From sequence record LR756501.1: a stretch of 64,000 nucleotides of DNA; one strand, 5' to 3'. Positions 3,907-59,109 of this stretch are shown piece by piece. The notes beneath the pieces were generated by a model that worked only from the letters and a program-made list of their open reading frames with translations, did no database searches and was not told where the DNA came from. The position numbers and the translations under genes were made by a program. The number at the start of each line of letters is the position of its first letter. Positions within the stretch are counted from its first letter, which is position 1.

Positions 3907-4254
3907 TTTATTTAACTCAATTAGTTTATTATAAATGATTTCACCGTATTTATTACCAACTTGCATACTTTCCATCGCCACAATTCCCATCTTAGATAGA
4001 TAGGTTTTACCTAAATCAGTTTTATAAAATTCAATTATTCCAAGTATTTCTTCGTTAGTGAAGTACTTATCATATATTGGAATAATTTCGTTTTCTATAT
4101 CTTTTATAACATCTTCTATATCAACGTTTTCTTCTTTATAATTTGGAATAAGATGTTTAACGGCGTTTATAACTGTTATAGCGGAATTTTCGTATGATTT
4201 AGTACCACCGTTTAATTCTAAAAGAGTTTTTATATTTTTAATTTTTTCTTCCAT
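3901..4254 (-). CDS. DUF2059-like protein
   Basis: IYDKYFTNEEILGIIEFYKTDLGK matches the DUF2059 signature. Confidence 0.75.
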   Translation of the reverse strand: MEEKIKNIKTLLELNGGTKSYENSAITVINAVKHLIPNYKEENVDIEDVIKDIENEIIPIYDKYFTNEEILGIIEFYKTDLGKTYLSKMGIVAMESMQVGNKYGEIIYNKLIELNKS

Positions 4255-4790
4255 TATTCTGACCAGTTTTCCTCTCCGTAAGGATCAAGTTCGTTATAAA
4301 CTCTAATACCTTCTGAAATGATTTTTTCTTTTGGTTTAATATATTCAGCGTCTGGATTAAACGAGTCATTTGATCTATTAACAGCGTCAAATGAAAAAAC
4401 TTTCTTTATATTCACTGTTCCATCTGAATTAACAGAACCAGCTGCTCTTGGTCTAAATACAAAATCTCCACCTTTATCTAAAATGTCTTTTAGTTCTTTA
4501 CCACAGGATGTGTTTAAAATCTTTATTTCGCCAACTACCTTATCGTCTTCGATTCTAACATTTTCGATGGTGTGGGATACTCTACGTAGAGTAGTATCAA
4601 ATGTATCTGGATAACCTAATTCCCCGTAAGCAACGTGTAATCTCTCTTGTTTTTCGTTGAACTCTTTAATGCAATTTCTCAAGTTTTCGTTATCTTGATA
4701 TATTCTACCGTTTAAATTAAGTTGATTTAAAGGTATTAGTGTTGTTGTAAATTTTTCTTTCATATTATTAGATTGCTTTTTCAAACCCAT
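4254..4790 (-). CDS. T4 gp21-like prohead protease homolog, probably catalytically inactive
   Basis: NLNGRIY, AYGELGYP (gp21 GELNHP), VSH, GEIKILNT.CG, FRPRAAGSV (gp21 VSSRGLGS), FDAV; C-terminal DPYGEENW. Confidence 0.78.
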   Translation of the reverse strand: MGLKKQSNNMKEKFTTTLIPLNQLNLNGRIYQDNENLRNCIKEFNEKQERLHVAYGELGYPDTFDTTLRRVSHTIENVRIEDDKVVGEIKILNTSCGKELKDILDKGGDFVFRPRAAGSVNSDGTVNIKKVFSFDAVNRSNDSFNPDAEYIKPKEKIISEGIRVYNELDPYGEENWSE

Positions 4791-8087: not shown

Positions 8088-8375
8088 TTAAGGTTTCCAT
8101 TCTTTCTTTTCTTCTGGGTGTACCATTTTCAATTCTTCGTCTGTAAAATGAAAAATATTTTTAACAATCCATTCAACGTTAAAATAAGGTCTTCCTTCTT
8201 TATCGTAAACAGATTGTAAAGAAGATGCTACTGATACTCTTTTTTCAATGAGATCTAAAGCGTTATACTCATCAATCACTTCATCTTGTTTATCGTTGTT
8301 GTAAACAGTATCGAAAGCAATTTGTTCTTGTTCTGTGAGCGAATTATAAAGCTCAAATAATTCTATACCTGTCAT
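8088..8375 (-). CDS. Small protein resembling the C-terminal segment of T4-type portal gp20
   Basis: DLIEKRVS...GRPYFNVEWIVKNIFHFTDEEL resembles gp20 EILERRIN...[21 protein letters not shown] (sequence recalled, not aligned). Confidence 0.45.
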   Translation of the reverse strand: MTGIELFELYNSLTEQEQIAFDTVYNNDKQDEVIDEYNALDLIEKRVSVASSLQSVYDKEGRPYFNVEWIVKNIFHFTDEELKMVHPEEKKEWKP

Positions 8376-36807: not shown

Positions 36808-37399
36808 TGTCTATATTATCTTTTAGGAAATCTGAAAATCTATTATATTTTTTCCATTCTGTTTTTAAAAATATTCCCTCAGCCTTATTTATTAATTCTA
36901 CACTTTCCTTATTTCTCAATTTATGTGGTTTAACTTCGTAATCTAATCTACATAAATCTAAACCATCTGCGTCTCTTAATATAGAAACAGTTTGCCAATA
37001 CGGATTTTCTCTTTCTATTTCATATCTTTCTGAATGATTAGATATAGCTAATCTTATAGCTTTTAAATCTTCTTCATTCATACCATTTTTAATAAAGAGT
37101 TCTTTAAAGAGTGGGAATTTTTCTGAAGCAGCGTCTTTACCGTGTACTTTACAATTATCGTCATTTCTTCTTGCCATATCGTGAACAAAAGCCGCCATGA
37201 ATGCCCTTTTAGTGTTGAGTTTATCTCCTATTTCATTACCAATCATAAGACAATTAAACATAACTCTGAATGTGTGATTAATACCGTGTATATCAGATTT
37301 ATGATTAAAATTATCATCAGATAAATTAAAATCGTTAAAGTTTATATTTAAACTCTTGGTGAAGTCCATAAAGTTATATTTACTAAATTCTTTAATCAT
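36800..37399 (-). CDS. HD-domain phosphohydrolase
   Basis: IHGINHTFRV, FVHDMAR, HG..AA, NHS, LRDADGLD; probable start MIKEFSKY at 37399. Confidence 0.85.
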   Translation of the reverse strand: MIKEFSKYNFMDFTKSLNINFNDFNLSDDNFNHKSDIHGINHTFRVMFNCLMIGNEIGDKLNTKRAFMAAFVHDMARRNDDNCKVHGKDAASEKFPLFKELFIKNGMNEEDLKAIRLAISNHSERYEIERENPYWQTVSILRDADGLDLCRLDYEVKPHKLRNKESVELINKAEGIFLKTEWKKYNRFSDFLKDNIDND

Positions 37400-39923
37400 T
37401 CCATTCCTCCTCTCCATATGGATCATTTGGATGTAATTTCAATCTCAACTCTTCTCTTTTTCTATTTATCTCTGTATTAAAGATATGTTGAATTTTTACT
37501 TCCTTATAATCTCTTAATTTATCCATTTGTATATAATCTTTGAACGGATTGACTTCTTCAATCTCACCATGCTTATAAATTCTATCACACATTATAGCGT
37601 TCCATCCCCAGTCACTATGAGTAGAATGGAATCTAAAAACATACAACAACATTTTCTTTCTTTTTTTAGTTATAAGTTTATTTTCTTTTCCTGGTCGTTC
37701 AAGAACGTCGTAATCATTTTTATCATAAGGAATTTCACATATTATTCTGTACCATTCGCCCTTTCTTAAAAAAGGAACTATATAATCTTCGAAGTAATTG
37801 TGCCAACGTTTTAACTCCAGTTCTTCGCCTGTTTTATTAAATTCAACGTATTCATTTATTTTACTTTCATTCCATATTTCTTCACCGTAAGGATCAATAT
37901 CTATGTTTATCAAACTCAATTCCTCTTTATCTTTATCAAATTTTTTACACAATTTTTCTCTCTCGTCATAAGTTATTTTTAAAGCTTTTTCGGATTTTAT
38001 TGGGTAAAATAATTTGCCCCTAACCTCGCGATCTAATTTAACTGTATAACTATTAAAATGACTATCATCAACAAAAACTATTTCACCTGTTAGATTTGGA
38101 TATTTATCATATACACAAAGTATTGAATCACCAACTTTAAAATTTTCATTTATTTTACTCTCATTCATATATAAATAATTATCCATATAATCTTGGTCTA
38201 AAAATAGAACATCTTTATTAAGCGATGAATATCGAACTCTTTCAGCGTTACCGTATTCATTTTTATTATATTTTCCTACCCAATGATAAGGCACTAATTC
38301 AATTTTATCTTTTTTAATTCTTTCTATTTCTCTTTCTGAGATAGGTGATAAAACTTGATGTTTTTTAATTATATTCAAATCTTGTGTTCCGCCAAAAGAA
38401 TGTATTTGGTAATGACTTGTTAAAAAAGCAAAATAATAATCGTAACTACCTAAAAATTTCTTTTTGAAGACAATATACTTATCCTTAAAGTCGTCGTCGT
38501 TAATTTTAACATCCCAACCCCAGTCTTCTTCACCGTAAGGATCAATTTCAGCCATTTTTATTCTAGTGGCGTTTCTTTTCTTACTCTTTTTGGATTCCCA
38601 TACTTCTTCACCATAAGGATCTAGTTCTTTTTGTTTTAATCTTCTTTCTTCTTTCTCCTTCTCTAATTTTCTCCATAACTCTTTTATTCTATCTTCATAT
38701 TCTTCATAAGGAACTACATCAAAATTGGCTAAATTCCACCAACCATCTTTATCAATCCAATTATCATTTTTCGGTAATGGCCCTCTAATAAGAGTTATAC
38801 CATGTGAAATAGTTCTCACATCTTGAATTTTAATAGGTAATCCGACTGGATAACCACTCCCAGTGAACACTGGTTCTCCGCCTCTGTCAAACGCAAATGA
38901 TGCTTGATCTTTACTCTTTAAAATAGCTATTTTACCAATTAATTCATTACCTAGGTTTTCAACTATTTCCAATGGCATAATCTTATGAACACCGATATCT
39001 TTTCCTTTTACTCTACTCCAATAATAATGATCAGTATTATTTATATTTGTGATTCTAAATTCTATATCTTCTAAACCAGGATTTGATACTTTAACAATAT
39101 CATTTATCTTTATATTTAAATTTTTAAATTTATTTCTATTTTCTCTATTTTCAGCTAATTCAATATGTTCAATAATTATATTTCTTTTTTCGTTCCATGT
39201 ATCTATTTTAATAGTTCCGAATCCACTTGGAGCCGGTCTAATTTCACCTTTTCTATATTCAAACATATAACCAATAGTGAAAATATCTGACAAATTAGCA
39301 GAAGTCTCCATTACCTTGATAACTTTATATCTATAATCATCGAATTTTATTCTATACCAGTTATCAATTTGGATAAAATCTTTTAATAACCCCATTCTAA
39401 CCAATTTAGCACGATCTTGTAAAACAAAAATCTCTTTTCCTCCACCAAAAAATTTATTATTTTTATTTATATACATATAATCAGGCACATGTGAAAAGTC
39501 AACGTATTCATTTAAATCATCATTTTTTTGTAATTTACCGTGCTTAAACCATCTCACTCTTGGTTCCTGTTCTGTTTCGGAGTAAACTTGAATAATATTC
39601 GGATTCATACAAAAATCAATAGTTCTAAATCTTATAGCTCGATCTTCTTTACTACCAATGTTAATGTATGGTTGATTTGATCCGAATACAATTTCTTTAG
39701 ACACTAATCCTACTATATCATTATCATCGTAATGAATCTTAATAAGTTTTCCTTTTAACGTATATGATAAATATTCTTTTACAGCGATATTATTATCCAC
39801 GTTCTCACGATATTTATAAGCATCAATTACTCTATTTAAACTTTTTAAATCATTTTCATTTAAATAATCAAGAAGATTGATCCATTCATCCACGTTCTCA
39901 AAGATGTTGTATTTTGTAATCAT
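37392..39923 (-). CDS. Multi-module polyprotein-like putative virion protein with four DPYGEExW motifs
   Basis: 843 aa; MITKYNIFEN start; internal LNE/INE junctions; KOW/SH3-like FKVGD...GEIV module. Confidence 0.7.
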   Translation of the reverse strand: MITKYNIFENVDEWINLLDYLNENDLKSLNRVIDAYKYRENVDNNIAVKEYLSYTLKGKLIKIHYDDNDIVGLVSKEIVFGSNQPYINIGSKEDRAIRFRTIDFCMNPNIIQVYSETEQEPRVRWFKHGKLQKNDDLNEYVDFSHVPDYMYINKNNKFFGGGKEIFVLQDRAKLVRMGLLKDFIQIDNWYRIKFDDYRYKVIKVMETSANLSDIFTIGYMFEYRKGEIRPAPSGFGTIKIDTWNEKRNIIIEHIELAENRENRNKFKNLNIKINDIVKVSNPGLEDIEFRITNINNTDHYYWSRVKGKDIGVHKIMPLEIVENLGNELIGKIAILKSKDQASFAFDRGGEPVFTGSGYPVGLPIKIQDVRTISHGITLIRGPLPKNDNWIDKDGWWNLANFDVVPYEEYEDRIKELWRKLEKEKEERRLKQKELDPYGEEVWESKKSKKRNATRIKMAEIDPYGEEDWGWDVKINDDDFKDKYIVFKKKFLGSYDYYFAFLTSHYQIHSFGGTQDLNIIKKHQVLSPISEREIERIKKDKIELVPYHWVGKYNKNEYGNAERVRYSSLNKDVLFLDQDYMDNYLYMNESKINENFKVGDSILCVYDKYPNLTGEIVFVDDSHFNSYTVKLDREVRGKLFYPIKSEKALKITYDEREKLCKKFDKDKEELSLINIDIDPYGEEIWNESKINEYVEFNKTGEELELKRWHNYFEDYIVPFLRKGEWYRIICEIPYDKNDYDVLERPGKENKLITKKRKKMLLYVFRFHSTHSDWGWNAIMCDRIYKHGEIEEVNPFKDYIQMDKLRDYKEVKIQHIFNTEINRKREELRLKLHPNDPYGEEEWND

Positions 39924-40005: not shown

Positions 40006-40971
40006 ATGATTAAATTTAACCTAATAATTGATGGCAACTACCTACTACAAAAATCTGTTCACATACTTCACAAAAATAAAATATTAGTATCAGAATTATA
40101 CAACGTAATAGAAAGAGATTATCACACACTTACAAAATTATACCCATTCGATAAGATATACTTTATATCAGATAGTTTTAGAAATTGGAGAAAAGAATTT
40201 TTTGAAGGGTACAAAGGCACAAGAAAACGTGACGATAAAGTGGATTGGGACTTCGTCTTCGGTGAATACACCAAACTCAAAGAATTCCTTAAAACTAAAA
40301 AGAACTGCGTACAATTCCAAATGGATAACCTAGAAGGCGATGATCTTATTGCCTACGTTATGAAGACACTTAACAACAAAGGACAATCAAACTTCTTAAT
40401 GTCTAACGATAGTGACCTTTTACAACTAATTAACTACGACTTAGATAAGAGATATATCAATATAATGTATAATTACAAGATGACTGATGATAGAGTATTT
40501 ATACCTGAGCATTACCAAATATTTACTAAGTACGTAAAAGACACCTACGTTGATGATATGTTTGAAGATAACAATGAAACGGAATTCTTATCTTTTCTTG
40601 ATAATTTCACAAGAACAAGAAAGACTTCTCTTATCAATTCTGAATTAGAACTCTTTATGAAAGTAATGGGCCATAACAAAGATAATATCAAATCAGTATA
40701 TATGAAAGGTGATAGAGGTATAGGTAAAAGTGGTATTCTTAAAATATATGATACATACAAAGAAACCCATTCTGAACCAATTGATTTTAACTCAATTGAA
40801 TTTAAAGATAGAATTATAGATCATATTAAACTATATAAAAGATTGAAAGACAACAGCATGAATGAAATGATGAGTGATAGATTAACAAGAAATTTGACTT
40901 TAGTTAAATTGGATGAAACGTCTATGCCACCACATTTATATAAATTAATGAAGAAGGAGGTAAACTTATGA
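40006..40971 (+). CDS. T4 RNase H-like 5'-3' exonuclease (FEN family)
   Basis: IIDGNYL, WRKEFFEGYKGTR, EGDDLIA, SNDSDLLQL, KDNI motifs. Confidence 0.85.
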   Translation: MIKFNLIIDGNYLLQKSVHILHKNKILVSELYNVIERDYHTLTKLYPFDKIYFISDSFRNWRKEFFEGYKGTRKRDDKVDWDFVFGEYTKLKEFLKTKKNCVQFQMDNLEGDDLIAYVMKTLNNKGQSNFLMSNDSDLLQLINYDLDKRYINIMYNYKMTDDRVFIPEHYQIFTKYVKDTYVDDMFEDNNETEFLSFLDNFTRTRKTSLINSELELFMKVMGHNKDNIKSVYMKGDRGIGKSGILKIYDTYKETHSEPIDFNSIEFKDRIIDHIKLYKRLKDNSMNEMMSDRLTRNLTLVKLDETSMPPHLYKLMKKEVNL

Positions 40972-41489
40972 AAATAAAAGACATTTTGAAGAAATTAGGA
41001 ATTATTAAAAAAGAGTATGTTCCAATCGAACCTTATAGAGGCGGTAATATGTACGATTTGTTTGTTAAAAAGACTATTGATAAACGTTTAGGACGTAAAA
41101 ACACAGCGGTTATTGATGACGATAAAATTAATTGGAACTCAACTTATGAAGGACCAAAAATTAGGAGATTTACTATTCCTGTTAATGGTTTATCAAGAGA
41201 AGAGGCTGAAGATCAAATTAAGAAATTGATGAGTGAGTACCACGAAGATGTGGAGTGGAAGGATGATTATAAATTACCAGAAGTTAAAAGAGAATATTCC
41301 GATTTAGATCCTTACGGTGAAGAAAATTGGAACGATGATATTCACTCTTTTGATAAAGATTACTGGTTTCCCACTAAAAGACAAAAAAGTTTGATTGAAC
41401 AAGCCAAGATTATGTATTCAAAGAATAACGCCGCGATATATAAAAAGTTTGTAATACCTATTCCTAATTGGAACGCAGTTTTAGAATAA
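40968..41489 (+). CDS. Small protein with portal gp20-like segment and DPYGEENW motif
   Basis: RRFTIPVNGLSREEAEDQIKKLMSEYHEDV...DYWFP resembles the portal RRIFYIDVGNLP..KAEQ....M..Y...ED(F/Y)WLP segment. Confidence 0.5.
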   Translation: MKIKDILKKLGIIKKEYVPIEPYRGGNMYDLFVKKTIDKRLGRKNTAVIDDDKINWNSTYEGPKIRRFTIPVNGLSREEAEDQIKKLMSEYHEDVEWKDDYKLPEVKREYSDLDPYGEENWNDDIHSFDKDYWFPTKRQKSLIEQAKIMYSKNNAAIYKKFVIPIPNWNAVLE

Positions 41490-41525
41490 AAAAAAAGAGG
41501 ACTTAAGTCCTCTTTTTTTTATTCT
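41483..41525. terminator. Bidirectional terminator
   Basis: AGAATAAAAAAAAAGAGGAC-TTAA-GTCCTCTTTTTTTTATTCT between convergent genes. Confidence 0.85.
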
Positions 41526-41790: not shown

Positions 41791-42201
41791 TTATAAATTT
41801 ATTCTTTTAGTAAATACTTGTGTACCGTCTGTTATTTTTATAAAATATAATCCATTTGTTAATCCTTCTTTCTTAAAAGTCGTTTCACATTTTAAATCTT
41901 TTTCCACTAATTTTCTTCCAAATATATCGTATAAAAACATTTTATATCCAGTGGCATCAGATTTAACCATAAAATCAATATTGCCTGGATTTACTTTCAT
42001 ATAAATTTCAACACTACAACTCTCTGTTTTTATTTCTGTCCATTTATCACAATCAAATATTTTCAAATATCCAAATTGGTCAAAATGATAATTGTTTTCA
42101 GTACTAACAATCCCACCACCACAAGGTTTAGCTGGTTGGGCAATTGATATTATTAATACCAAAGCAAATAAAATTGATAAAATAAGTTTCTTCATCGTCA
42201 T
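41791..42201 (-). CDS. Secreted protein with T9SS (Por) type A C-terminal sorting domain
   Basis: Signal peptide MKKLILSILFALVLIISIAQ; C-terminus LYDIFGRKLV...GLTNGLYFIKITDGTQVFTKRINL. Confidence 0.75.
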   Translation of the reverse strand: MTMKKLILSILFALVLIISIAQPAKPCGGGIVSTENNYHFDQFGYLKIFDCDKWTEIKTESCSVEIYMKVNPGNIDFMVKSDATGYKMFLYDIFGRKLVEKDLKCETTFKKEGLTNGLYFIKITDGTQVFTKRINL

Positions 42202-43135: not shown

Positions 43136-43666
43136 TTATTTTTTAGGAGATACCATAACCCATAGTCTTCTCCCCTCCATCTTAGGAAGAGCTTCTGGTT
43201 TACCATATTCTGTTAAAGCGTCTATAAATCTCAACAAAAGAATATTACCCATTTCAACGTAGTTACATTCTCTACCCGAGAAGAATACAAAAGCCTTCAC
43301 TTTGTTTCCTTCTTTGAGGAATTCTGTAGCGTGTTTTAATTTGAAATTGAAATCGTGATCTCCTGTATTATAAGTAAATCTCAACTCTTTTACTTTAACT
43401 TTTTTATTGTTTGCTTTTTGGATTTTCTCTTTTTGTTTTCTTTCATATAAGAGTTTTCCGTAATCAACAATTTTACAAATAGGTGGAACGGCATTTGGGG
43501 AAATTTCCACTAAGTCTAATTCTCTATCTTCAGCCATTCTCAATGCTTCGTGAATAGTAACCACTTGTGATTCTATCCCTTCGCCAACAACTCTCACTTC
43601 ATTAACACCTCTGATGTGCTTGTTAATTCTTTCAGTTGCTTCTTTTTTGCTCATAATTTTCTTCAA
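43136..43666 (-). CDS. infC: Translation initiation factor IF-3
   Basis: RINKHIR..EVRVVG, LDLVEISPNAVPPICKIVDYGK, KELRF, DHDFNFKLKHATEFLKEGNKVK. Confidence 0.95.
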   Translation of the reverse strand: MKKIMSKKEATERINKHIRGVNEVRVVGEGIESQVVTIHEALRMAEDRELDLVEISPNAVPPICKIVDYGKLLYERKQKEKIQKANNKKVKVKELRFTYNTGDHDFNFKLKHATEFLKEGNKVKAFVFFSGRECNYVEMGNILLLRFIDALTEYGKPEALPKMEGRRLWVMVSPKK

Positions 43667-44096: not shown

Positions 44097-44498
44097 TTAT
44101 AATTCTGTGTGCTTTTTGAAATTTCTTATATAGTGTCTTATGTTGTCTGAACCAGTCTGATTAAATGAATGAACTAAAGTTTCTGGCAATTTAATATTGT
44201 TATCCAAACAATAATCACATAACCATTTGGCGCATTCGTAACCAGTCTTCTCTTTATATGAGAAATAATCAATAGAGTTTTCAGTCGACCAAGGCTGATT
44301 ATCACTAAAATAGTGTTCGTCTGCTAAATCGTGATCAAAAGAAACTAAACGTGGCACACCATTTTTAGTAATATACTTCACAAACTCGTCGTAAGATCTA
44401 ACAATGATCCATTTAAGTTGTAAGTATCTAGTGTCCTTTGTATAAGGATAGGAATCGTAGGGATGACGTATGTCGTCAAGGAATAAATTATAATCCAT
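44097..44498 (-). CDS. Cyclic-phosphate-processing receiver-like domain protein
   Basis: LFLDDIRHP, WIIVRSYDEF, VSFDHDL, TGYECAKWL, VHSFN. Confidence 0.78.
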   Translation of the reverse strand: MDYNLFLDDIRHPYDSYPYTKDTRYLQLKWIIVRSYDEFVKYITKNGVPRLVSFDHDLADEHYFSDNQPWSTENSIDYFSYKEKTGYECAKWLCDYCLDNNIKLPETLVHSFNQTGSDNIRHYIRNFKKHTEL

Positions 44499-44864: not shown

Positions 44865-45974
44865 TTACATAAATTCTCTTTTATCTACACTCTTATAGAA
44901 ATTATCAACTGTATAATATTTTTTATATGTTTCTATAACATTATCTAGTGTTATATCGTGAATATTGTTTTCTATAGCCCAAGTTTCTGGTTTTATATAA
45001 GTTTCAACATTGATATGTCTATTTATATCGACAGTATCTATTTTATTTATTATTGAATTTTTAACCTGATCAAATTTAGATTTTGTTAAAAAACTTAAAT
45101 CAGATAATGTGTCGTCTAGAGTCACCATGAGTTTATTCACTTTATCGTCATCTGTTTCAGTTGATATTATATTAATGCCCGAATAATCACTAAGTCTATC
45201 TATTGTACATCTTATATAATAAGCTAGGCCGGCTTTTTTTCTTATATTCTTATAGAGTGGTGAATTTATACCGTTCGATAATAAATAATTTATAAAGAAT
45301 ACAGTGTCCCAGTTATCTTCTATTATAGGTGATAAGTATATTATTGAAGATTTATTTAAAAGACTCTTATATTTATCTATATCTTTATTAGAATTATTAA
45401 CATAACTATAATGATAATCGTTTCTAAAATCGTTGAACTTAATATCAGATACGAAAGGATTATTTTTCGACACATTAATTATCTTGGATGGCTTACTATA
45501 ATGATTGTTAAAGTATTGTTCACATTCTTCCAAAGTTATTCTCTCTATATCTTTCTTTTTCCCTATTGAATTATAAGAGTTCAGTTTCTTTCTGTATAAA
45601 TTTAAAAGATGTGAAGGACTTTGCATATTGAATATAGATGTGTATTCCTCCAGTAGTACAGTTTTTTCTAACTGAAATTCTTTTTGATTAATATTTATAT
45701 GTGATAATCTACCTAAGAATTCATTTTTGTATTTTGTAACATATTTATCTAGACCACTCAAATAGAATACTATATTAGTCGGTGATGTATATGCGTTCCA
45801 AGCTAATCCTGAATTTTGGAACTCCTCTACCAAAGTATCATCGAAATTATGACTCATTAAATGTTCTATTAAATGAGAGATGCCGTAGGTTCCTTCTTTT
45901 TCGTTAATAACAGTTCGGTTGTAAACTACATAGAATCCAGAAAGTTCCGTCTGGCTTTCAATATTTAGAATCAT
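44865..45974 (-). CDS. M16 (insulinase) family zinc peptidase
   Basis: GISHLIEHLM (HxxEH), NAYTS, EKTVLLEE, LYKNIRKKAGLAY. Confidence 0.85.
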   Translation of the reverse strand: MILNIESQTELSGFYVVYNRTVINEKEGTYGISHLIEHLMSHNFDDTLVEEFQNSGLAWNAYTSPTNIVFYLSGLDKYVTKYKNEFLGRLSHININQKEFQLEKTVLLEEYTSIFNMQSPSHLLNLYRKKLNSYNSIGKKKDIERITLEECEQYFNNHYSKPSKIINVSKNNPFVSDIKFNDFRNDYHYSYVNNSNKDIDKYKSLLNKSSIIYLSPIIEDNWDTVFFINYLLSNGINSPLYKNIRKKAGLAYYIRCTIDRLSDYSGINIISTETDDDKVNKLMVTLDDTLSDLSFLTKSKFDQVKNSIINKIDTVDINRHINVETYIKPETWAIENNIHDITLDNVIETYKKYYTVDNFYKSVDKREFM

Positions 45975-46232: not shown

Positions 46233-49200
46233 ATGAAAGTTTTTAATATAAACGACACCTATTTCAAATACCAAAAATGTCTTTCAGGTATAACATATCA
46301 ATTTGTTAATCAACTAGATAATATCTACGATAAAAATCTGATGGTTGGTACTAATTATTGTATATACTGTATGTATAATGAATTTGATATTATTAACAAT
46401 TTCATGATAAACCTTTACCAGGTTGACGTTTGTAGTACAATCAATTTAGATTTAACTAAAAGATATTACGATATAGATGGTGCTTATTTGAGAACAGGAC
46501 ACAGAGTATTACTTGTTAATCAAACAGATCCGATTGAGAATGATGTTTATAATGTAGATTCTAGAGGTTTCCTTATTCTTTCAGACGAATTAGCAACAAC
46601 AGGTAAAACATGGAGATATAAAGCTTATGTTAAGTTAGGCGGTAATAAAGGTAAACAATTTCATCTTAAAAATTCAGGTAACAGATTCCCACTTAAAGGT
46701 GAAAGAAAATACTTCTTGGACGGACACGGTTATATTGTTAAAAGTCTTTTTAATTACGACTTATTTGATACTGGTCCAATATACCCAAAACTGATTTTTA
46801 CTGATTACGAATTAGCAAGAATATCAGTTAATAAGAACTACGAATTATACGACAGTTTTCAATTTGAAACTGGCACAACTGTTGATATTCAATATCACGG
46901 TGGTAATTATTTGATAAATATTGATAACGTAGAAAGTAATTACACTTATAATGGAATAGTATCAGGCACTACAATTTATAATTTTAATAATTTCCCATTA
47001 GACGGATTTGGATATGAAACACATATAGAGGCTGGTGCAACTTTTTGTAGCAACGCTAGTGTTTACGATTACGTTAAATTAGAAATATCAGGCAATACTA
47101 ACCTAACGTTGAAGACTTTTATCAAGAGCACAGGAACCACAGAAATTGTTATATCTGACTATATACCAGATAACGTTTTAAATGATTATTATACAGGTGG
47201 CACATCAACATACACACTTACTAATTTAATGTTCGCTACAACAGGAACAACAAAAGACGTTGTTTTGGAGTCATTCTACGCAAAATATTTTGATATAGAC
47301 TCTTCTGATTTCTTATATCCTATACCAAATCCAAATAACATGTATTTTGATTACGACGGACTCAAATTCGTTATCAACTCAAATCTAAAAATATTTAATA
47401 CAAATAACCATTATATTAAATACCAATTATACGAACATCTAAACGAAATCAATTCATATTTGTTCAATTCAGGATATTCGTTTTTAATTAGTTATCCAAT
47501 GAACGCAGCCGAATTTTCAACAGAATATTACGACGGTAGAAATTTAACATCTTGGAACCCAATAGTATATCCAGATACTTATGGTGATACTAAAGGTACT
47601 CTTATTAAAATAAAGCCTTATACTCCTAGTACTGTGAACTATTTTAAAAATCATACTTACGTTAATATAACTAACAGTACTGGTAAATATAAGACTTTGA
47701 TTGTTGATTTAGTTTCAGATGATTATTTTGTAATAGAAACTTATAAATCTAACTCTGGTTTAACTATATCAGGAATAGAAACTATATACAATTTGAAAGA
47801 AATATCAGATATATTATATGACGTTTATATCAATGATGAAACACCAACAAATACTGATTATTTTAGAGTTCGCGACGAAGATATGAAAAGAAATATTTGT
47901 AATGGGTACGCTGACTTTATAAGTCAAGATATTGGTGTGATTAGTAACGTTACAGCTTTCTTAATGCAAGACGAACAACATAAATTCATTTTGAAAATTT
48001 ACGATCCAGAAAATTACGCAAATGGAGGTGTACCTAGAAAACCTGTTGTTGTTACAAAATTAAATGAAACTCACACTAGTACATCTGCAACGTTGCCTGG
48101 TGAAATAACAAGTGACGGTGGTACAAATATAACAGGTAGAGGTATATGTTGGTCAGCCTCACCTTTTGTGCAAAATACGTGTGTAATGGCTTCAACTTAT
48201 ACTAGTGGCGTTGGACCTTTTTCAAGTAATATTACGGGTCTAACACCAGAAACAACGTATTATTATAAGGCATACGCTACCAACGTTCAAGGAACTTCTT
48301 ACGGTGAACCTTATCCTTTTTTCACATCTACCGCTGTTTATACAGGGGCTACAGTAACTACAAATAGTGCTTCAGCGACATCTCATAAAATAACAGTTAA
48401 CGCTGATGTTATAGATAGAGGATATTGTTCAATATTAACAAGAGGAGTTGTTTATAAAACAGGAATATCTGGACCAACTATCGCTGATAATGTAGTAGTA
48501 TTTACACCAGAACCAGGTATTATTGGTCCTTACACTCTTGATTTAACTGGATTAACACATAATCAAATGTATTCTTATAACGCTTTCGCTGAAAATATTT
48601 GTGGGATAACATATGGTATCGGTGGTAACATATCAACTTTATATCCTTACGCACCAGTCTTAGATACAATAGGATGGAATAGTCCTACCACTTATAATAG
48701 CATAGACGTATTATGTAATCTAATAGATAACGACGGATCATTAACTGATCCTATTCACGGTGTAAACGAATTAGGAGTCGTGTGGTCAACTGATCCATAT
48801 AATGATCCAACAACAGGAAACACTGTTCAACCATTTGGTCCTTATCCTTACACTCTTGGCCCATATACTATTTATTTAACAGGATTAACATTTAACACAA
48901 CTTATTATTTCAGATCTTACGCTAAAAACACATTATATACTGGTCCTACTACGGCTTACGGTCCTGTAAAATCAGTAGCGACTTTACCTTTACCTGTTAC
49001 TCCAACGGTACAAATAAGTGGAGTATTATCTTACGGTACTTATTACGCTAATATATCTAATTTATTAGTATCAAATGGTAATTCACCGATAGTATCAGAA
49101 GGTTTGTATATTTCTACATCAAATCCTCCAACTATAAGTGATCCATTCTGGTCAGCAACAGGTACAACTAATTGGCACACGAATTTAACTGGATTAACTC

Positions 49201-54843: not shown

Positions 54844-55887
54844 ATGAACAATTACGTATTAAAGTTTAATGGATATATGAAAAAAGAATCTAATGAAGTT
54901 CAAGAAGCTACTGAATGGCCTTTGTACATATCTGATGAATTAGAGAAAATCTTAAAAAGAATCATATCTAATCCTATAGCAAAAAAATTAGTAGATTGTG
55001 GTAGATCCGGATTAAGTGGCAAGAAAGTAGTTAGTGACGTGTCTTTCCTTGATGTAGAAGGAGATAGTAAAAGTGTATCTTATTTTCCTATTACAAGAAT
55101 GGGGAAACTAGAAAAAGATATATCTCCCACATATAGACCAGAAAAAGATGATTCCATTTGGAGTTCGAGGTTGAGACAAAATATGACCTGGGGGAAAATG
55201 ATTAATAAATTATTTCCTGGTGAATTTACAAACATGGACATAGATAATTTCTATAATAGGTTTCGTCCAGAAATTGATGTGAAACAAAAAGAACAAGAAA
55301 GATTTAAAGTTGTTCGCGGCGAAGATATTAGATATTGGTACCTTGCAGATCATTGGGACGGATCTTTCAACTCTTGTATGCAAGGTTCTGGATCACAACC
55401 ATTTTTCGATATTTATTGTAACAATCCAGAGAAATGTGGAATGTTAATTTATTTTAGTGAAAGAAACCCTGATAAAATTATAGGTAGAGCACTTGTTTGG
55501 AACAATTTATTAAAACCAAGTGGCGATACCGCCGAGGATAAAAATCCATATACTTTATTAGATAGGGTTTATTTTCTTAATAATCAAGGTCCTCAAATAG
55601 AGGCAGCTTTTCATAAATACGCTATAGACCATAAATGGTTATACAAAAAAGGTGATTCATTTATGATGGACGGTGTAAGAAAAACAACATCTGTTGCAAC
55701 ACGTTTGAAACCAATAGATTATACTTATTATCCATATGTAGATACTATGGCTTATTATACACCAGCAACGGGTAGGGCAGCGTCAACACCAGGTAATCCT
55801 GGTAGAGATCCAAACAATCCAGCGAGAACTTTTCCTCGTTACAGTTTAAAAAATCAAAATGGTACTAAGTCACCAGTAGATAGATAA
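54844..55887 (+). CDS. Paralog 1 of a four-gene SCM/GRAL-W/DRxY/YPY-DT family
   Basis: GEDIRYWY, NSCM, FDIYCNNPEKC, GRALVW, DRVY, YPYVDT. Confidence 0.75.
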   Translation: MNNYVLKFNGYMKKESNEVQEATEWPLYISDELEKILKRIISNPIAKKLVDCGRSGLSGKKVVSDVSFLDVEGDSKSVSYFPITRMGKLEKDISPTYRPEKDDSIWSSRLRQNMTWGKMINKLFPGEFTNMDIDNFYNRFRPEIDVKQKEQERFKVVRGEDIRYWYLADHWDGSFNSCMQGSGSQPFFDIYCNNPEKCGMLIYFSERNPDKIIGRALVWNNLLKPSGDTAEDKNPYTLLDRVYFLNNQGPQIEAAFHKYAIDHKWLYKKGDSFMMDGVRKTTSVATRLKPIDYTYYPYVDTMAYYTPATGRAASTPGNPGRDPNNPARTFPRYSLKNQNGTKSPVDR

Positions 55888-55904
55888 AAAATAAAAATTA
55901 AGAT

Positions 55905-56990
55905 ATGAGCACATTATCACATTATAAAAACTTTGTTAATGAAGCAGGAGAACCAGTGATTGAACCAGAAAAACCTAAATTCGTTAAAGGTGAAAAGAAA
56001 CTCTTGAAGTTATTTATTTCGCCTAAGCTAGAAGGATTGCTTCAGAAGATGATGAAAACGGCGGATTTTCAAGCTAAAGCTATAGCTAGTAAGATTCTAA
56101 ATATTGATCAAGAACCAGATGAAAATCTTTTCGATATATCTTATATAGATGTTGATAATGATAAGGACGATTCTCTATCTTTTATGCCAGCTCAAAGAGC
56201 TTGGTTCAAAATGGGATTTACTGATCAAGCTGATGCAGATAAAAAACCTGCACCAAATTGTGAAATGTGGACAGGTGCTGGTAGACAATCTTTAGGTGTT
56301 GGTAAGTTTATTAATAGACTTTTTGATAATTTCTCAGATAAAGCAATAGATAGTTTTGTTAAATCATATAGGGCTGAAATCGCAGCAACTATGATTTATG
56401 ATAGATTTAAATTGGTAACTGGTGAAGATATTAGATTCTGGTACGCTGAATCAAATTATTATAAAGATCCAGGTGGTGGAAAAGACGCTGGCCTTAATAA
56501 CTCTTGTATGAGGTACGACGCTAGTTCAAGAGAAGGTAAAAATTGCCAACCATATTTTGATATTTATGTTAAAAACCCAGAAAAATGTGCAATGTTAATT
56601 TTAACAAACACACAAAATAAACTTCTTGGTAGAGCACTCGTATGGTCAAATCTTAGAAAACCAACAGATAAAACATTCATGGATAGAATTTATGTTTTCA
56701 AACAATCTGACGCTGAATTATTTAAGAAATACGCTATGGAAAAAGGTTGGTTATATAAATACGATCAACAAGCTTACGACGCTTCATATGTAGAAAACGG
56801 ACAAAGAGTTAATAAATCAGTTGCTCTTCAATTAAAACCCGCTGAATATAAAACTTATCCTTTCATGGATAGTTTAAAATATTACAATCCAGGTACTGGT
56901 AGATTGGGTTCAGATCCAGGTAACCCAGTTGAAGGAATGAAAAGACTAAAACTCGAAGGCGGTGGAGGACAAGCCGGTAGAGTAGACTAA
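55905..56990 (+). CDS. Paralog 2 of the same family
   Basis: GEDIRFWY, NSCM, FDIYVKNPEKC, GRALVW, MDRIY, YPFMDS. Confidence 0.75.
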   Translation: MSTLSHYKNFVNEAGEPVIEPEKPKFVKGEKKLLKLFISPKLEGLLQKMMKTADFQAKAIASKILNIDQEPDENLFDISYIDVDNDKDDSLSFMPAQRAWFKMGFTDQADADKKPAPNCEMWTGAGRQSLGVGKFINRLFDNFSDKAIDSFVKSYRAEIAATMIYDRFKLVTGEDIRFWYAESNYYKDPGGGKDAGLNNSCMRYDASSREGKNCQPYFDIYVKNPEKCAMLILTNTQNKLLGRALVWSNLRKPTDKTFMDRIYVFKQSDAELFKKYAMEKGWLYKYDQQAYDASYVENGQRVNKSVALQLKPAEYKTYPFMDSLKYYNPGTGRLGSDPGNPVEGMKRLKLEGGGGQAGRVD

Positions 56991-56999
56991 AAATAATAT

Positions 57000-58067
57000 T
57001 TGATAGTGGGACTTAAAAATTTTAATGGTTATGTATATGAAAGTGATATTAACGTGAAAGAACTTCCGATGTTTTTTTCGCCTAAACTTACTGAACTATT
57101 AAATTCAATAGATTCTAAAATATCAAAAGAATTATTAGATTTACCAAAGTCTGATGTTAAATTTCAAAATTCTTACGCTGATCTAACTAACGATATTGAT
57201 ACTATTAGTGTTCTACCAGCAAATAGAGTTGGTAGATTAGCTGGCGTAACAGAAGAAGATCTAGTTAATCCAAAGCCAAATAGTCCAGTATGGGGTGAAA
57301 AAGGAAGACAATCAATGAGAATTGGTGCTTTCGTCACAAGAACTTTACCAAAATATGCTGGAACAAAAGACCTTGAGAATTTTGTACATCTCATTAAAGG
57401 TAAATTAGATCAGGATAATTACGAATTAAAGATGGTAAGAGGTGAAGAGATACGTAAATGGTACCACGTTAAATCTTATTATAATCCTCATCCAGGTATG
57501 GAAGAAGCACCAGAAGAGGGAGTACTTGATGTTAGAACTCCTCTTATGAAGTCTTGTCTTAAACAACCAGAAAAACAATCATTTTTTGATATTTATTGCC
57601 AAAATCCCGAACAAGTTGGCATGTTAATCATGTTAAATAAAGAAGGCAAATTGGTAGCAAGAGCAATAATATGGTTTGATTGTTTTGTTGTGGATATACC
57701 AGGCAATCCAACAAAGGGTGTATTAATGGATAGGATTTATTATACAAACGAATCAGATGTAAATATCTTTATTGATTACGCTAAGGAGCGTGGTTGGTGG
57801 TACAAACCAAATCAGGCAAAAGAGGTTTATACTTTTGTAAAGGACGGACAAGTATGTGATAAAGGTATTACAACCAGATTAAAAAATCACGGTGTATTTG
57901 CTCGTTACCCATATATAGATACAATGTGTTTTTACACACCAGACACAGGAAGATTATCAACAATTAGAGGTAAACCCACTAAAAGTCCATTTACTGGTGA
58001 AACAATGGAAAGGTTCCAATTACATAAAGCCAACGGTGGTACAAAAAGACTCGCCAGAGACAAATAA
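57000..58067 (+). CDS. Paralog 3 of the same family
   Basis: GEEIRKWY, KSCL, FDIYCQNPEQ, ARAIIW, MDRIY, YPYIDT; GTG start. Confidence 0.75.
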   Translation: MIVGLKNFNGYVYESDINVKELPMFFSPKLTELLNSIDSKISKELLDLPKSDVKFQNSYADLTNDIDTISVLPANRVGRLAGVTEEDLVNPKPNSPVWGEKGRQSMRIGAFVTRTLPKYAGTKDLENFVHLIKGKLDQDNYELKMVRGEEIRKWYHVKSYYNPHPGMEEAPEEGVLDVRTPLMKSCLKQPEKQSFFDIYCQNPEQVGMLIMLNKEGKLVARAIIWFDCFVVDIPGNPTKGVLMDRIYYTNESDVNIFIDYAKERGWWYKPNQAKEVYTFVKDGQVCDKGITTRLKNHGVFARYPYIDTMCFYTPDTGRLSTIRGKPTKSPFTGETMERFQLHKANGGTKRLARDK

Positions 58068-58083
58068 AATAAACAAATTTTAA

Positions 58084-59109
58084 ATGGCCCTGTATAACTA
58101 TAACGGATTTTTATTTGAAGCAGACGATAAAGAAAAAAAGAAAATCCCACTTTATATTTCAGAAACATTATTATCTATATTATCTAATATAGATTCACCT
58201 ATAGCTAAAAAACTTATAGAATTAGATGCCACTAAACAGCCAACAGTTAAAGGTCATAATAAATTTGAAATATCTTATTTAGATTGTGATAGAACAAAAA
58301 AAGATAAAGAAGATAAAATATCTTTTATGCCCGCGGCTAAGGCTTCTGAAGTACCTGGAATATTGAGCAAAGTAGGAAGTATGGAAGAAATTATGCTTCC
58401 ATGTAATGATTGTTATAACTCTAAGTTAAGACAAGAAATGTCTGTTGGTAAAATAGTAAATAGATTATTCCCAGATACTTACAAACAAGTTGAGATTGAA
58501 AAGTTTGTAAATGATTTCAAAGCTGAAATGGGTAAAGCTTCAGCTAAATTCAAATTAGTTGAAGGAGAAGAAATAAGATATTGTTATCTTGAAAGTAATT
58601 ACGAGAATACGTCACAAGGTGATCTTAATAGTTCTTGCATGAAACACGAATACGCACAAAAATATTTAGATATTTATTGTAAGAATCCAGATAAATGTAA
58701 GTTATTAGTATTAATGAGTGATAAAAACGATAAAAAGATTAAAGGGAGAGCATTGGTTTGGATGGGATTACGCAAACCAACAGGTAAAGTTTACATGGAT
58801 AGAATTTACGTTTTAAATTACGCAGACCAAAAATTATATATTGATTACGCTATCGAGCACGATTGGTTGCATAAAGCACAACAAGTGATGCACGACGCGT
58901 CTTATATAGAGAACGGTAAAAGGGTTCACGCCTCAGTAGCCATTCAATTAAATCCTGCTATGTATGATTATTACCCATCAATGGACACTCTTGCTTATTA
59001 CACTCCAAGTACTGGTAGGTTAGGAAGTAACGCTGGAAATTACGTTAAAGGACATCCACGTTACACACTTAACAGTGCGGAAGGCGGAGCTACAAAATTA
59101 GACAAATAA
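58084..59109 (+). CDS. Paralog 4 of the same family
   Basis: GEEIRYCY, SSCM, LDIYCKNPDKC, GRALVW, MDRIY, YPSMDT. Confidence 0.75.
   Translation: MALYNYNGFLFEADDKEKKKIPLYISETLLSILSNIDSPIAKKLIELDATKQPTVKGHNKFEISYLDCDRTKKDKEDKISFMPAAKASEVPGILSKVGSMEEIMLPCNDCYNSKLRQEMSVGKIVNRLFPDTYKQVEIEKFVNDFKAEMGKASAKFKLVEGEEIRYCYLESNYENTSQGDLNSSCMKHEYAQKYLDIYCKNPDKCKLLVLMSDKNDKKIKGRALVWMGLRKPTGKVYMDRIYVLNYADQKLYIDYAIEHDWLHKAQQVMHDASYIENGKRVHASVAIQLNPAMYDYYPSMDTLAYYTPSTGRLGSNAGNYVKGHPRYTLNSAEGGATKLDK

Follow-up and report, generated by a model that had tools for sequence, protein, structure and literature searches.

The portal-like gene and its surroundings

The gene examined here lies on the plus strand at positions 40968-41489 of a 64,000-nucleotide stretch of sequence record LR756501.1 (the window; record positions 48028-48549), which belongs to a 735-kb freshwater phage. 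It encodes a protein of 173 amino acids plus a stop codon, and is preceded by a strong Shine-Dalgarno-like sequence, AAGGAGGT (40954-40961, +), located 6 nt before the ATG. The start codon overlaps the TGA of the upstream gene (ATGA at 40968-40971). This co-oriented neighbor (40006-40971, +) codes for a 5'-3' exonuclease of the FEN/RNase H type (Pfam PF02739, E=1.7e-14), and the two form a plus-strand unit that is syntenic in L041, the locus that carries an ortholog. An intrinsic terminator hairpin, with a 14-bp stem flanked by A and T runs (41489-41520), follows the gene; it is shared with the convergent minus-strand gene and is conserved in the L041 locus. The true portal, prohead protease and major capsid protein genes form a block at record positions 71969-78166, such that the small gene is located 24 kb from the head module.

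The protein carries IRRFTIPVNGLSREEAEDQIKKLMSEYHEDVEW at residues 65-97, DPYGEENW at residues 114-121 and FDKDYWFP at residues 128-135. A preliminary description, made from the sequence alone, had pointed out these features as a stand-alone portal-like fragment with an inserted tag, resembling the clip region of T4 gp20, and this observation is confirmed. By itself, the protein does not reach the curated threshold of the Pfam T4-type portal family (Portal_T4, PF07230; E=0.006, 15.8 bits against a cut-off of 22.9; residues 62-138 against profile positions 203-264). BLASTP comparison with the phage's own 608-residue portal, however, yields three homologous blocks (3e-14, 8e-9 and 1e-5), and that portal scores 236 bits on PF07230 and matches T4 gp20 in the PDB at 2e-28. 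A profile of the clip family has gp20 residues 269-343 as its top PDB hit (E=0.27), although the register of the two gp20 alignments differs by one residue. A search of PHROGs returned nothing (E=0.24), and a Pfam NARF hit on residues 2-49 was sub-threshold (19.2 against 25 bits).

The term fragment is incomplete as a description, since the protein is a permuted mosaic of three portal segments (portal residues 64-89, 259-285 and 272-334) and not one contiguous piece. The first block (residues 25-50, 41040-41117, +; GGNMYDLFVKKTID...) is homologous to portal residues 64-89 in the N-terminal region (54% identity, E=1e-5), and its NMYDLF.KK motif is invariant in the family. It is followed by clip strand beta1, the tip (NGLSREEAEDQ), helix alpha6 and DVEW (residues 63-97, 41154-41258, +). 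Within this stretch, residues 71-94 correspond to portal residues 284-307 and to T4 gp20 residues 288-311. The clip hairpin is then interrupted by an insertion (residues 98-127, 41259-41348, +), 30 residues long where portals have 16, as judged by alignment with 20 true-portal clips; it carries the tag module R-E-Y-S-D-L-DPYGEENW-ND, with the tag core at 41307-41330. The clip homology resumes at 41349-41372 (+; residues 128-135). The last block (residues 139-165, 41382-41462, +; E=8e-9) comprises a segment similar to stem helix alpha5 (SLIEQAKIMY) and a second beta1 strand (IYKKFVIPI), which in the portal lie upstream of the clip (residues 259-285). Compared with gp20 (PDB 3JA7/6UZC; clip domain residues 279-358, domain boundaries from PMC4493910), the protein lacks the wing, helix alpha7, the tunnel loop and the crown. 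The homology covers beta1, the tip, alpha6 and the hairpin up to DYW(F/L)P, plus stem helix alpha5 and an N-terminal segment, and the protein is derived from portals of the same phage clade.

Structure prediction was of limited use. AlphaFold2 with a six-sequence family alignment gave a pLDDT of 37, whereas a 65-row alignment gave a pLDDT of 65 but a pTM of only 0.26, with no compact fold; helices were predicted at residues 77-94 (pLDDT about 90) and 137-157. A Foldseek search of this model against the PDB gave no meaningful match. We regard these results as uninformative, and not as evidence against the clip fold.

The possibility that the gene is non-functional debris, left over from duplication or recombination of portal genes, was also considered. 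Two relatives are truncated (family member P0004, at 108 residues, and the L041 ortholog, which has an in-frame TAA), the Pfam match is sub-threshold, and huge genomes may tolerate junk. Nevertheless, dN/dS against the syntenic L041 ortholog is 0.145 at a dS of 1.03, including the part after the relative's stop codon, and 0.09 for the C-terminal alpha5-beta1 part. The synteny, the Shine-Dalgarno-like site, the overlap with the upstream gene and the terminator are conserved, orthologs range from 34 to 98% identity, members at 34% identity keep the same blocks, and the family is large and diversified. An identical sequence was found in an independent lake study. No RNA run was found to hold the gene, which is not evidence of silence. 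Debris is thus largely refuted and is considered very unlikely.

A family of stand-alone clip proteins

An exhaustive profile search revealed 53 short clip-core proteins among 150 cluster representatives, about 47 of which lack any wing or post-clip sequence. The order in which the clip precedes the alpha5 and beta1 elements recurs in representatives P0003, P0005, P0014, P0016, P0044 and P0136, including distant members and the untagged P0044. The most conserved part of the family is the beta1-tip-alpha6 surface. The position of the tag relative to the clip varies among members (before, inside, after or absent), and about 40 of the clip-only clusters have no tag. In the orthologs P0001, P0002, P0003 and P0005 the tag is retained with the flank R-[VIE]-Y-S.

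The clip tip of the family differs systematically from that of true portals. The residues aligned with the T4 terminase-contact pair R295/K296 are E-E in the 173-residue protein (REEAEDQ), but Q-Q (RQQAEQQ) in all 23 distinct true-portal clip sequences of the clade that we examined; 42 of the 53 family members have [RK]-E-x-A-E as opposed to R-Q-Q-A-E. The protein is therefore not a faithful copy of the resident clip tip, whereas an untagged clip paralog of 99 residues in the same genome keeps the portal tip. In MAFFT alignments, from which rows of misplaced short alpha5 segments were dropped in one case, its clip is closer to a different portal group (50-55% identity) than to the resident type (42-48%).

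The DPYGEE.W tag

The tag, an invariant D-P-Y-G-E-E-x-W followed by acidic residues (here DPYGEENW followed by ND), is not specific to head proteins. It occurs 103 times in 89 mostly unrelated ORFs of the genome (0.0007 expected), including a deaminase/CCA-adding fusion, nucleotidyltransferases, a methyltransferase, a GNAT, membrane proteins and multi-module chains, and once the tag is masked these 89 ORFs fall into 87 BLAST clusters, which excludes a single paralogous family. A DNA-level repeat or mobile element was likewise rejected, since the 103 copies comprise 81 distinct 24-mers, synonymous variation occurs at every codon, and all 103 six-frame occurrences lie inside ORFs. Both the tag and the clip family were found in the lineage of this genome and not in three other phages of ~640 kb; LR756502, LR756504 and LR745206 contain no copy of the tag, and it is therefore not shared by all huge genomes of "Mahaphage" size. 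Searches of the literature for the motif, and for stand-alone clip proteins or portal paralogs, found nothing relevant.

The tag resembles short linear docking motifs shared by many client proteins, such as the acidic-aromatic C-terminal tip of SSB, the eukaryotic EEVD tail and the capsid-targeting sequence of T4 internal proteins, in that an invariant acidic-aromatic motif of eight residues, conserved at the protein level, is placed at termini or linkers of many unrelated proteins. It differs from them in sequence, in having far more clients within one genome, in its additional use as a repeated inter-module element, and in its occurrence on the cytoplasmic side of membrane proteins; no evidence of its cleavage or packaging exists, and its reader remains hypothetical.

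These data raise the possibility that the function lies mainly in the tag system, and that the clip piece is one of many small modules carried by a proteome-wide addressing or processing system, with no role for clip partners. In this regard, metagenomic chains hold up to 11 unrelated modules of about 100-145 residues, each ending in the tag plus two residues, which is exactly where single-module genes stop, and the tag of the 173-residue protein has the upstream R-x-[FY]-S flank typical of module ends. The numerous untagged clip-only clusters, however, argue that the clip core is selected in its own right, and its conservation exceeds that of the tag. We therefore consider this reading unlikely.

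An origin of the tag from a host protein tail is not supported, as 72 scattered single matches were found in 596 Gb of cellular genomes, against about 69 expected by chance. One of three similar contigs of ~3.3 kb, binned with lake Bacteroidetes MAGs, was read and looks like phage DNA.

Partial copies of head genes and possible roles of the clip protein

The preliminary description had inferred, from the portal-like gene together with a dead gp21, that the phage makes tagged decoys of head-assembly proteins, and had noted that the portal clip contacts terminase. This interpretation is partly supported. The protein is indeed a stand-alone derivative of the portal clip with the tag as an insertion, and a catalytically dead, tagged gp21 paralog exists at window positions 4254-4790 (-). 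Its catalytic His and Ser assignments rest on alignment to the resident protease and on those of T4 gp21, since the resident protease gave no match against PDB sequences. Partial copies of head genes are in fact more numerous than had been described: the genome holds four portal pieces, among them the 99-residue clip paralog, a 342-residue portal paralog without clip or crown and a crown-only ORF, as well as seven capsid-protein pieces and a terminase (TerL) ATPase with a mutated Walker A motif. By contrast, the view of the tag as a mark of head-assembly decoys is not supported, in light of its distribution on unrelated ORFs and its absence from several head-gene pieces.

The analysis thus establishes a protein-coding gene maintained by purifying selection, which encodes a rearranged, tagged copy of the portal clip and belongs to a diversified family of small clip-only proteins; its function, including decoy activity and any binding to terminase or other partners, is inferred. 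In T4, the three-stranded sheet of the clip is made from one strand of one subunit and two strands of its neighbor (PMC4493910), and the extra alpha5-beta1 copy would therefore let a single chain reproduce this inter-subunit surface, an idea that the predicted structures do not demonstrate. In this view, the protein would act as a soluble mimic of the assembled clip and would engage something that normally docks on it, most likely the large terminase (TerL, encoded outside the window as two exteins), otherwise a neck/adaptor protein, while the tag would tether it to whatever common partner reads the tag on the other 88 proteins. The expected effect would be sequestration, timing or localization of packaging components, and not portal building. 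Co-transcription with a replication-type exonuclease suggests that the protein is made before the late head genes. The conserved core of the family is the aligned equivalent of a synthetic gp20 peptide (288-311) reported to bind terminase gp17 and inhibit DNA packaging, and the clip is also the attachment site of gp17 and gp13 (PMC4493910), but here it forms part of a natural gene with additional structural elements and a tag. A faithful competitor would be expected to keep the portal tip, which this protein does not. We favor this explanation over the others, but only tentatively.

Alternatively, the protein may modulate portal assembly. As it carries two beta1 strands and one hairpin, one strand could remain unpaired and pair with the clip hairpin of real portal monomers or incomplete rings, thereby acting as a chaperone, cap or poison subunit that controls when or where the dodecamer forms. 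The clip sheet is the only main-chain inter-subunit contact in gp20, the first block derives from the gp20 N-terminal region, which contacts neighboring subunits in situ (PMC7136217), the genome also carries the clip-less and crown-only portal pieces, and the lack of compactness of the predicted monomer would be expected for a partner-dependent fold. On the other hand, the clip is closer to a different portal group than to the resident one, and this reading does not explain why the tip is systematically acidic. It is possible but seems unlikely.

A further unlikely possibility is that early-made partial or dead copies of portal, protease, capsid protein and terminase ATPase bind bacterial sensors of these core proteins without activating them. 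Portal, terminase and major capsid protein are known triggers of Avs-type STAND sensors (PMC13581612), and portal rings trigger RAZR (PMC13017515); the genome holds domain-level copies of these same proteins, and the clip gene would be co-transcribed with a replication-type gene rather than with the late head module. This support is purely circumstantial, and no such decoy is described in the papers that we read.

In its broadest form, which we also consider unlikely although not excluded, this lineage of huge freshwater phages would run two linked, undescribed systems: a proteome-wide peptide address that connects about 90 unrelated proteins per genome, and long multi-module chains, to one reader, and a deliberate set of domain-level partial or dead copies of its own packaging and head machinery. 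The latter would serve as decoys against bacterial sensors, or as checkpoints that hold terminase and portal apart until replication of the 735-kb genome is complete.

Portals are treated as single-copy, indivisible head components, and their clip is the docking site for the packaging motor and the neck. A selected, diversified family of free clip proteins would mean that some huge phages regulate, or protect, the portal-terminase-neck interface with soluble mimics. The DPYGEE.W motif is a rare example in a phage of an invariant short linear motif reused about 100 times per genome, and offers a handle for finding a central hub of huge-phage cell biology, whereas the partial and dead copies of head and packaging proteins provide a concrete candidate set for the question of whether phages use decoys against immune sensors of core virion proteins.

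The order beta1-alpha6-hairpin-alpha5-beta1 is what a duplicated alpha5-beta1-alpha6-hairpin unit would give after trimming of both ends, as in circularly permuted domains that are produced by tandem duplication followed by truncation. In the present case, however, both beta1 copies are retained, and an unrelated portal segment and a tag were added.

The mini-portal gene and its relation to the resident portal

The window is 100% identical to the unannotated 735,411-bp 'uncultured phage' record LR756501.1; positions in the window are converted to positions on the record by adding 7060, and the GC content is 31%. The ORF at 40968..41489(+) encodes 173 aa and contains exactly the portal-like and DPYGEENW motifs reported in the preliminary description, whose observation was thus confirmed. 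An AAGGAGGT site lies 6 nt upstream of the ATG, which overlaps the TGA of the upstream gene (ATGA), and a terminator with a 14-bp stem follows at 41489-41520. The upstream gene codes for a 5'-3' exonuclease (PF02739, 1.7e-14). The two genes form an isolated plus-strand pair between minus-strand genes, and the pair is syntenic in a related contig, L041 (IMGVR_UViG_3300028283_000171). The same sequence recurs, with no differences over short contigs, in lake metagenomes from an independent study. No RNA evidence was found for the gene.

Near the mini-portal gene, at window 44865-45974(-), 43136-43666(-), 44097-44498(-) and 41791-42201(-), lie an M16 (insulinase-type) peptidase with an HxxEH motif, a full-length IF3 homolog, a cREC_REC domain protein, and a small secreted protein with a T9SS C-terminal sorting domain. 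The M16 peptidase is, from sequence alone, a conceivable tag- or leader-processing enzyme. The T9SS sorting-domain protein lies next to the mini-portal gene, and contigs that bear the tag are binned with lake Bacteroidetes MAGs; both point weakly to a Bacteroidota host.

In the Pfam search alone, the match of the 173-aa protein to Portal_T4 is sub-threshold (E=0.006, residues 62-138 against profile 203-264). The real portal of the genome is a 608-aa ORF just beyond the end of the window, at record 71969-73795, which scores 236 bits on PF07230 and matches T4 gp20 at 2e-28, with portal residue n corresponding to gp20 residue n+4 around the clip. ORFs outside the window were called mechanically (first start codon after a stop), and their N-terminal positions are therefore approximate. 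BLASTP of the 173-aa protein against this portal gives three significant blocks, wherein residues 25-50 align with portal residues 64-89 (54% identity, E=1e-5), residues 54-135 with portal residues 272-334 (39% identity, E=3e-14), and residues 139-165 with portal residues 259-285 (about 40% identity, E=8e-9).

According to the published boundaries of gp20 (stem 255-278 and 359-377, clip 279-358; PMC4493910), the protein is composed of a piece of the portal N-terminal region, followed by clip strand beta1, the tip and helix alpha6, the clip hairpin up to DYWFP, and then stem helix alpha5 and a second beta1 strand, which in the portal precede the clip. The order is therefore permuted, and beta1 is present twice. 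DPYGEENW lies in a stretch of 30 residues that replaces 16 residues of the hairpin in true portals. A profile built from the clip family finds gp20 residues 269-343 as its best hit in the whole PDB; the hit is weak (E=0.27) but in the expected place.

Purifying selection and the family of stand-alone clip proteins

Stand-alone relatives of similar length were found at 98, 65, 55, 65 and 34% identity. They keep NMYDLF.KK, the tag with its R-x-Y-S flank, KDYW(F/M)P and a C-terminal KKFVIPV strand. Against the syntenic ortholog in L041 (5151-5729), dN/dS is 0.145 at dS 1.03. This ortholog has a single in-frame TAA at the Asp codon of FDKDYWFP, yet the 44 codons after it still show a dN/dS of 0.09, indicating purifying selection; the stop is therefore recent, an error, or read through. 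The same contig also carries a true portal about 25 kb away. The selection data, together with the family data described below, largely exclude the possibility that the gene is debris.

An exhaustive profile search of 1.84 billion cluster representatives returned 149 hits. Of these, 53 are proteins of 260 aa or less that carry the clip core; about 47 of the 53 have no wing or post-clip portal sequence, and 13 also carry the tag. The architecture of the representatives varies: the tag is located before the clip (P0009, P0014, P0021), inside the hairpin (the protein studied here, P0003, P0005, P0007), at the C-terminus (P0012, P0027), or is absent (P0025, P0044). Several members, including the untagged P0044, keep the permuted order of clip followed by alpha5/beta1. 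The common denominator is F-x-I-P-V-G-x-L-[ST]-[RK]-E-x-A-E-x-Q…L-M-x-x-Y, which in the present protein comprises residues 68-91 and overlaps the aligned equivalent (residues 71-94) of gp20 288-311. This T4 peptide is reported to bind terminase gp17 and to inhibit packaging, and mutations at N291/M292 and R295/K296 in the same region abolish packaging (PMC4493910). Searches of the literature found nothing on stand-alone clip proteins or on the tag motif, which supports but does not prove their novelty.

Examination of the clip tip shows a diagnostic difference. In 23 distinct true-portal clip sequences of the clade the tip is invariant, G-L-T-R-Q-Q-A-E-Q-Q, whereas the mini-protein has G-L-S-R-E-E-A-E-D-Q and 42 of the 53 family members have [RK]-E-x-A-E. 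The only two Q-Q tips in the family belong to likely true-portal fragments. In the stronger of two alignments to gp20, the E-E pair aligns with T4 R295/K296, while the weaker profile alignment shifts the register by one residue. The clip of the mini-protein is also closer to a second portal group (L042-L049, 50-55% identity) than to the resident portal type (42-48%). It is therefore not a recent copy of the resident gene.

A chain with beta1-alpha6-hairpin followed by alpha5-beta1 has what is needed to reproduce the inter-subunit clip interface on its own, which fits the recurrence of this order in distant family members. We therefore tentatively favour a soluble mimic of the assembled clip surface that would engage a clip partner, with terminase as the first candidate and the neck as the second, and would be tethered through the tag. 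The portal homology, the permuted order, the selection on the gene and the existence of the family are shown by the sequence comparisons, whereas the mimicry, the binding to terminase or neck and the tethering are inferred. In this regard, the AF2 model of the protein has confident helices at 77-94 and 137-157 but no compact fold (pLDDT 65, pTM 0.26), and a Foldseek search was uninformative. The acidic tip argues against a simple like-for-like competitor of the resident portal. A modulator of portal assembly is a rival, though less favoured, reading of the same protein.

Distribution and context of the DPYGEE.W tag

DPYGEE.W occurs 103 times in 89 ORFs of the LR756501.1 genome, against 0.0007 expected from composition, and the reversed control pattern gives 0 matches. 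In the window it is also found at 2077-2100(-) and 4272-4295(-). Selection is on the peptide: there are 81 distinct 24-mers, every third codon position varies, and all six-frame occurrences lie inside ORFs. With the tag masked, the 89 ORFs fall into 87 BLAST clusters. Of the 103 copies, 41 lie within 6 residues of the C-terminus, most often with a stop exactly two residues after the Trp, and these often have an upstream R-[VI]-[FY]-[ST] flank. Another 18 copies are near the N-terminus and 44 are internal.

The tagged proteins include a 1233-aa fusion of deaminase, CCA-adding/poly(A) polymerase and HD domains with four tags between domains, as well as nucleotidyltransferases, a methyltransferase, a GNAT, a PRTase and zinc-ribbon proteins. 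Several membrane proteins carry the tag next to the basic juxtamembrane stretch, so that it faces the cytoplasm. An 843-aa protein at window 37392-39923(-), with no Pfam match, contains four tags (residues 435, 461, 677 and 834, the last at the C-terminus) and starts with the MITKYNIFE-type N-terminus shared by many small proteins of this genome. Many small ORFs (e.g., at record 474332-476339(+)) share an N-terminal start of the MIKKFKLFE type, often followed within 5-15 residues by the tag, and runs of adjacent small genes all carry the tag at the same end. In metagenomes, proteins with up to 11 tags (P0008, P0015) are chains of mostly unrelated modules of about 100-145 aa, each ending in the tag plus two residues.

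The tag was found in more than 120 stretches in large viral contigs from many samples, in none of three other ~640-kb phages, and at chance level in 596 Gb of cellular genomes (72 found, about 69 expected). The portal, protease-scaffold and capsid genes do not carry it. The tag is therefore a modular, lineage-specific short linear motif with an unknown reader, and not a label for head-protein decoys. The interpretation in the preliminary description was supported in part: the protein is a stand-alone derivative of the portal clip with the tag as an insertion, but its proposal that the tag marks decoys of head-assembly proteins was not supported. That the mini-protein is simply one module of this tag system is a further rival to the clip-mimic reading.

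Partial copies of head and packaging genes

The genome contains additional partial copies of head and packaging genes. In the case of the portal, a 342-aa paralog at record 142020-143048(+) aligns to portal 4-275 and then, weakly (E=0.03), to 358-412, and thus lacks clip and crown. A 99-aa clip-only ORF at record 668797-669096(-) keeps the portal-type tip GLTRQQAEQ and has no tag. A 95-aa stand-alone, crown-only ORF, also without a tag, lies in the window at 8088-8375(-) and is homologous to portal 448-500 (E=4e-12; PF07230 above the cut-off at 25.1 bits).

The prohead protease/scaffold (807 aa) has a 178-aa paralog of its protease domain at window 4254-4790(-), with 45% identity (4e-28). The motifs that hold the presumed catalytic His and Ser are changed, as the paralog reads YGELGYPD where the protease has YGEFDHPD, and FVFRPRAAG where the protease has FVSSRAAG. 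It ends in the tag (...ELDPYGEENWSE). Two further pieces of the protease/scaffold exist. The gp23-type major capsid protein (608 aa, PF07068; record 76340-78166(+)) has seven small partial paralogs scattered across the genome (e.g., record 276342-276932(-), 542326-542892(+), 552409-552918(-) and 145891-146127(+)), of which four cover its N-terminal region and three carry the tag. Apart from spurious frames inside giant repetitive genes, these head genes are the real genes with the most scattered small partial paralogs. An immune decoy is another rival explanation for the mini-protein, and it too remains conjectural.

The large terminase (TerL) appears to be split by a split intein in the P-loop, with its pieces at record 609226-611493(-) and 623865-624410(-). 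A 181-aa N-piece ends in ...SRQVGK followed by Cys and an intein-N-like tail, and a 755-aa C-piece, 12 kb away, starts with a Hint-like block of about 146 aa and continues with Thr plus the rest of the ATPase and the nuclease. In addition, an unsplit 390-aa paralog of the terminase ATPase domain alone, at record 699854-701026(-), is 45% identical to the TerL C-piece; its Walker A reads SRQMGIT (Lys replaced by Ile), and it has no nuclease domain. Just upstream of the head module are four tandem members of a family of ~350-aa proteins with at least 15 paralogs (window 54844-59109(+) and record 434121-440763(-)); the one member searched against Pfam (window 57000-58064) gave no match.
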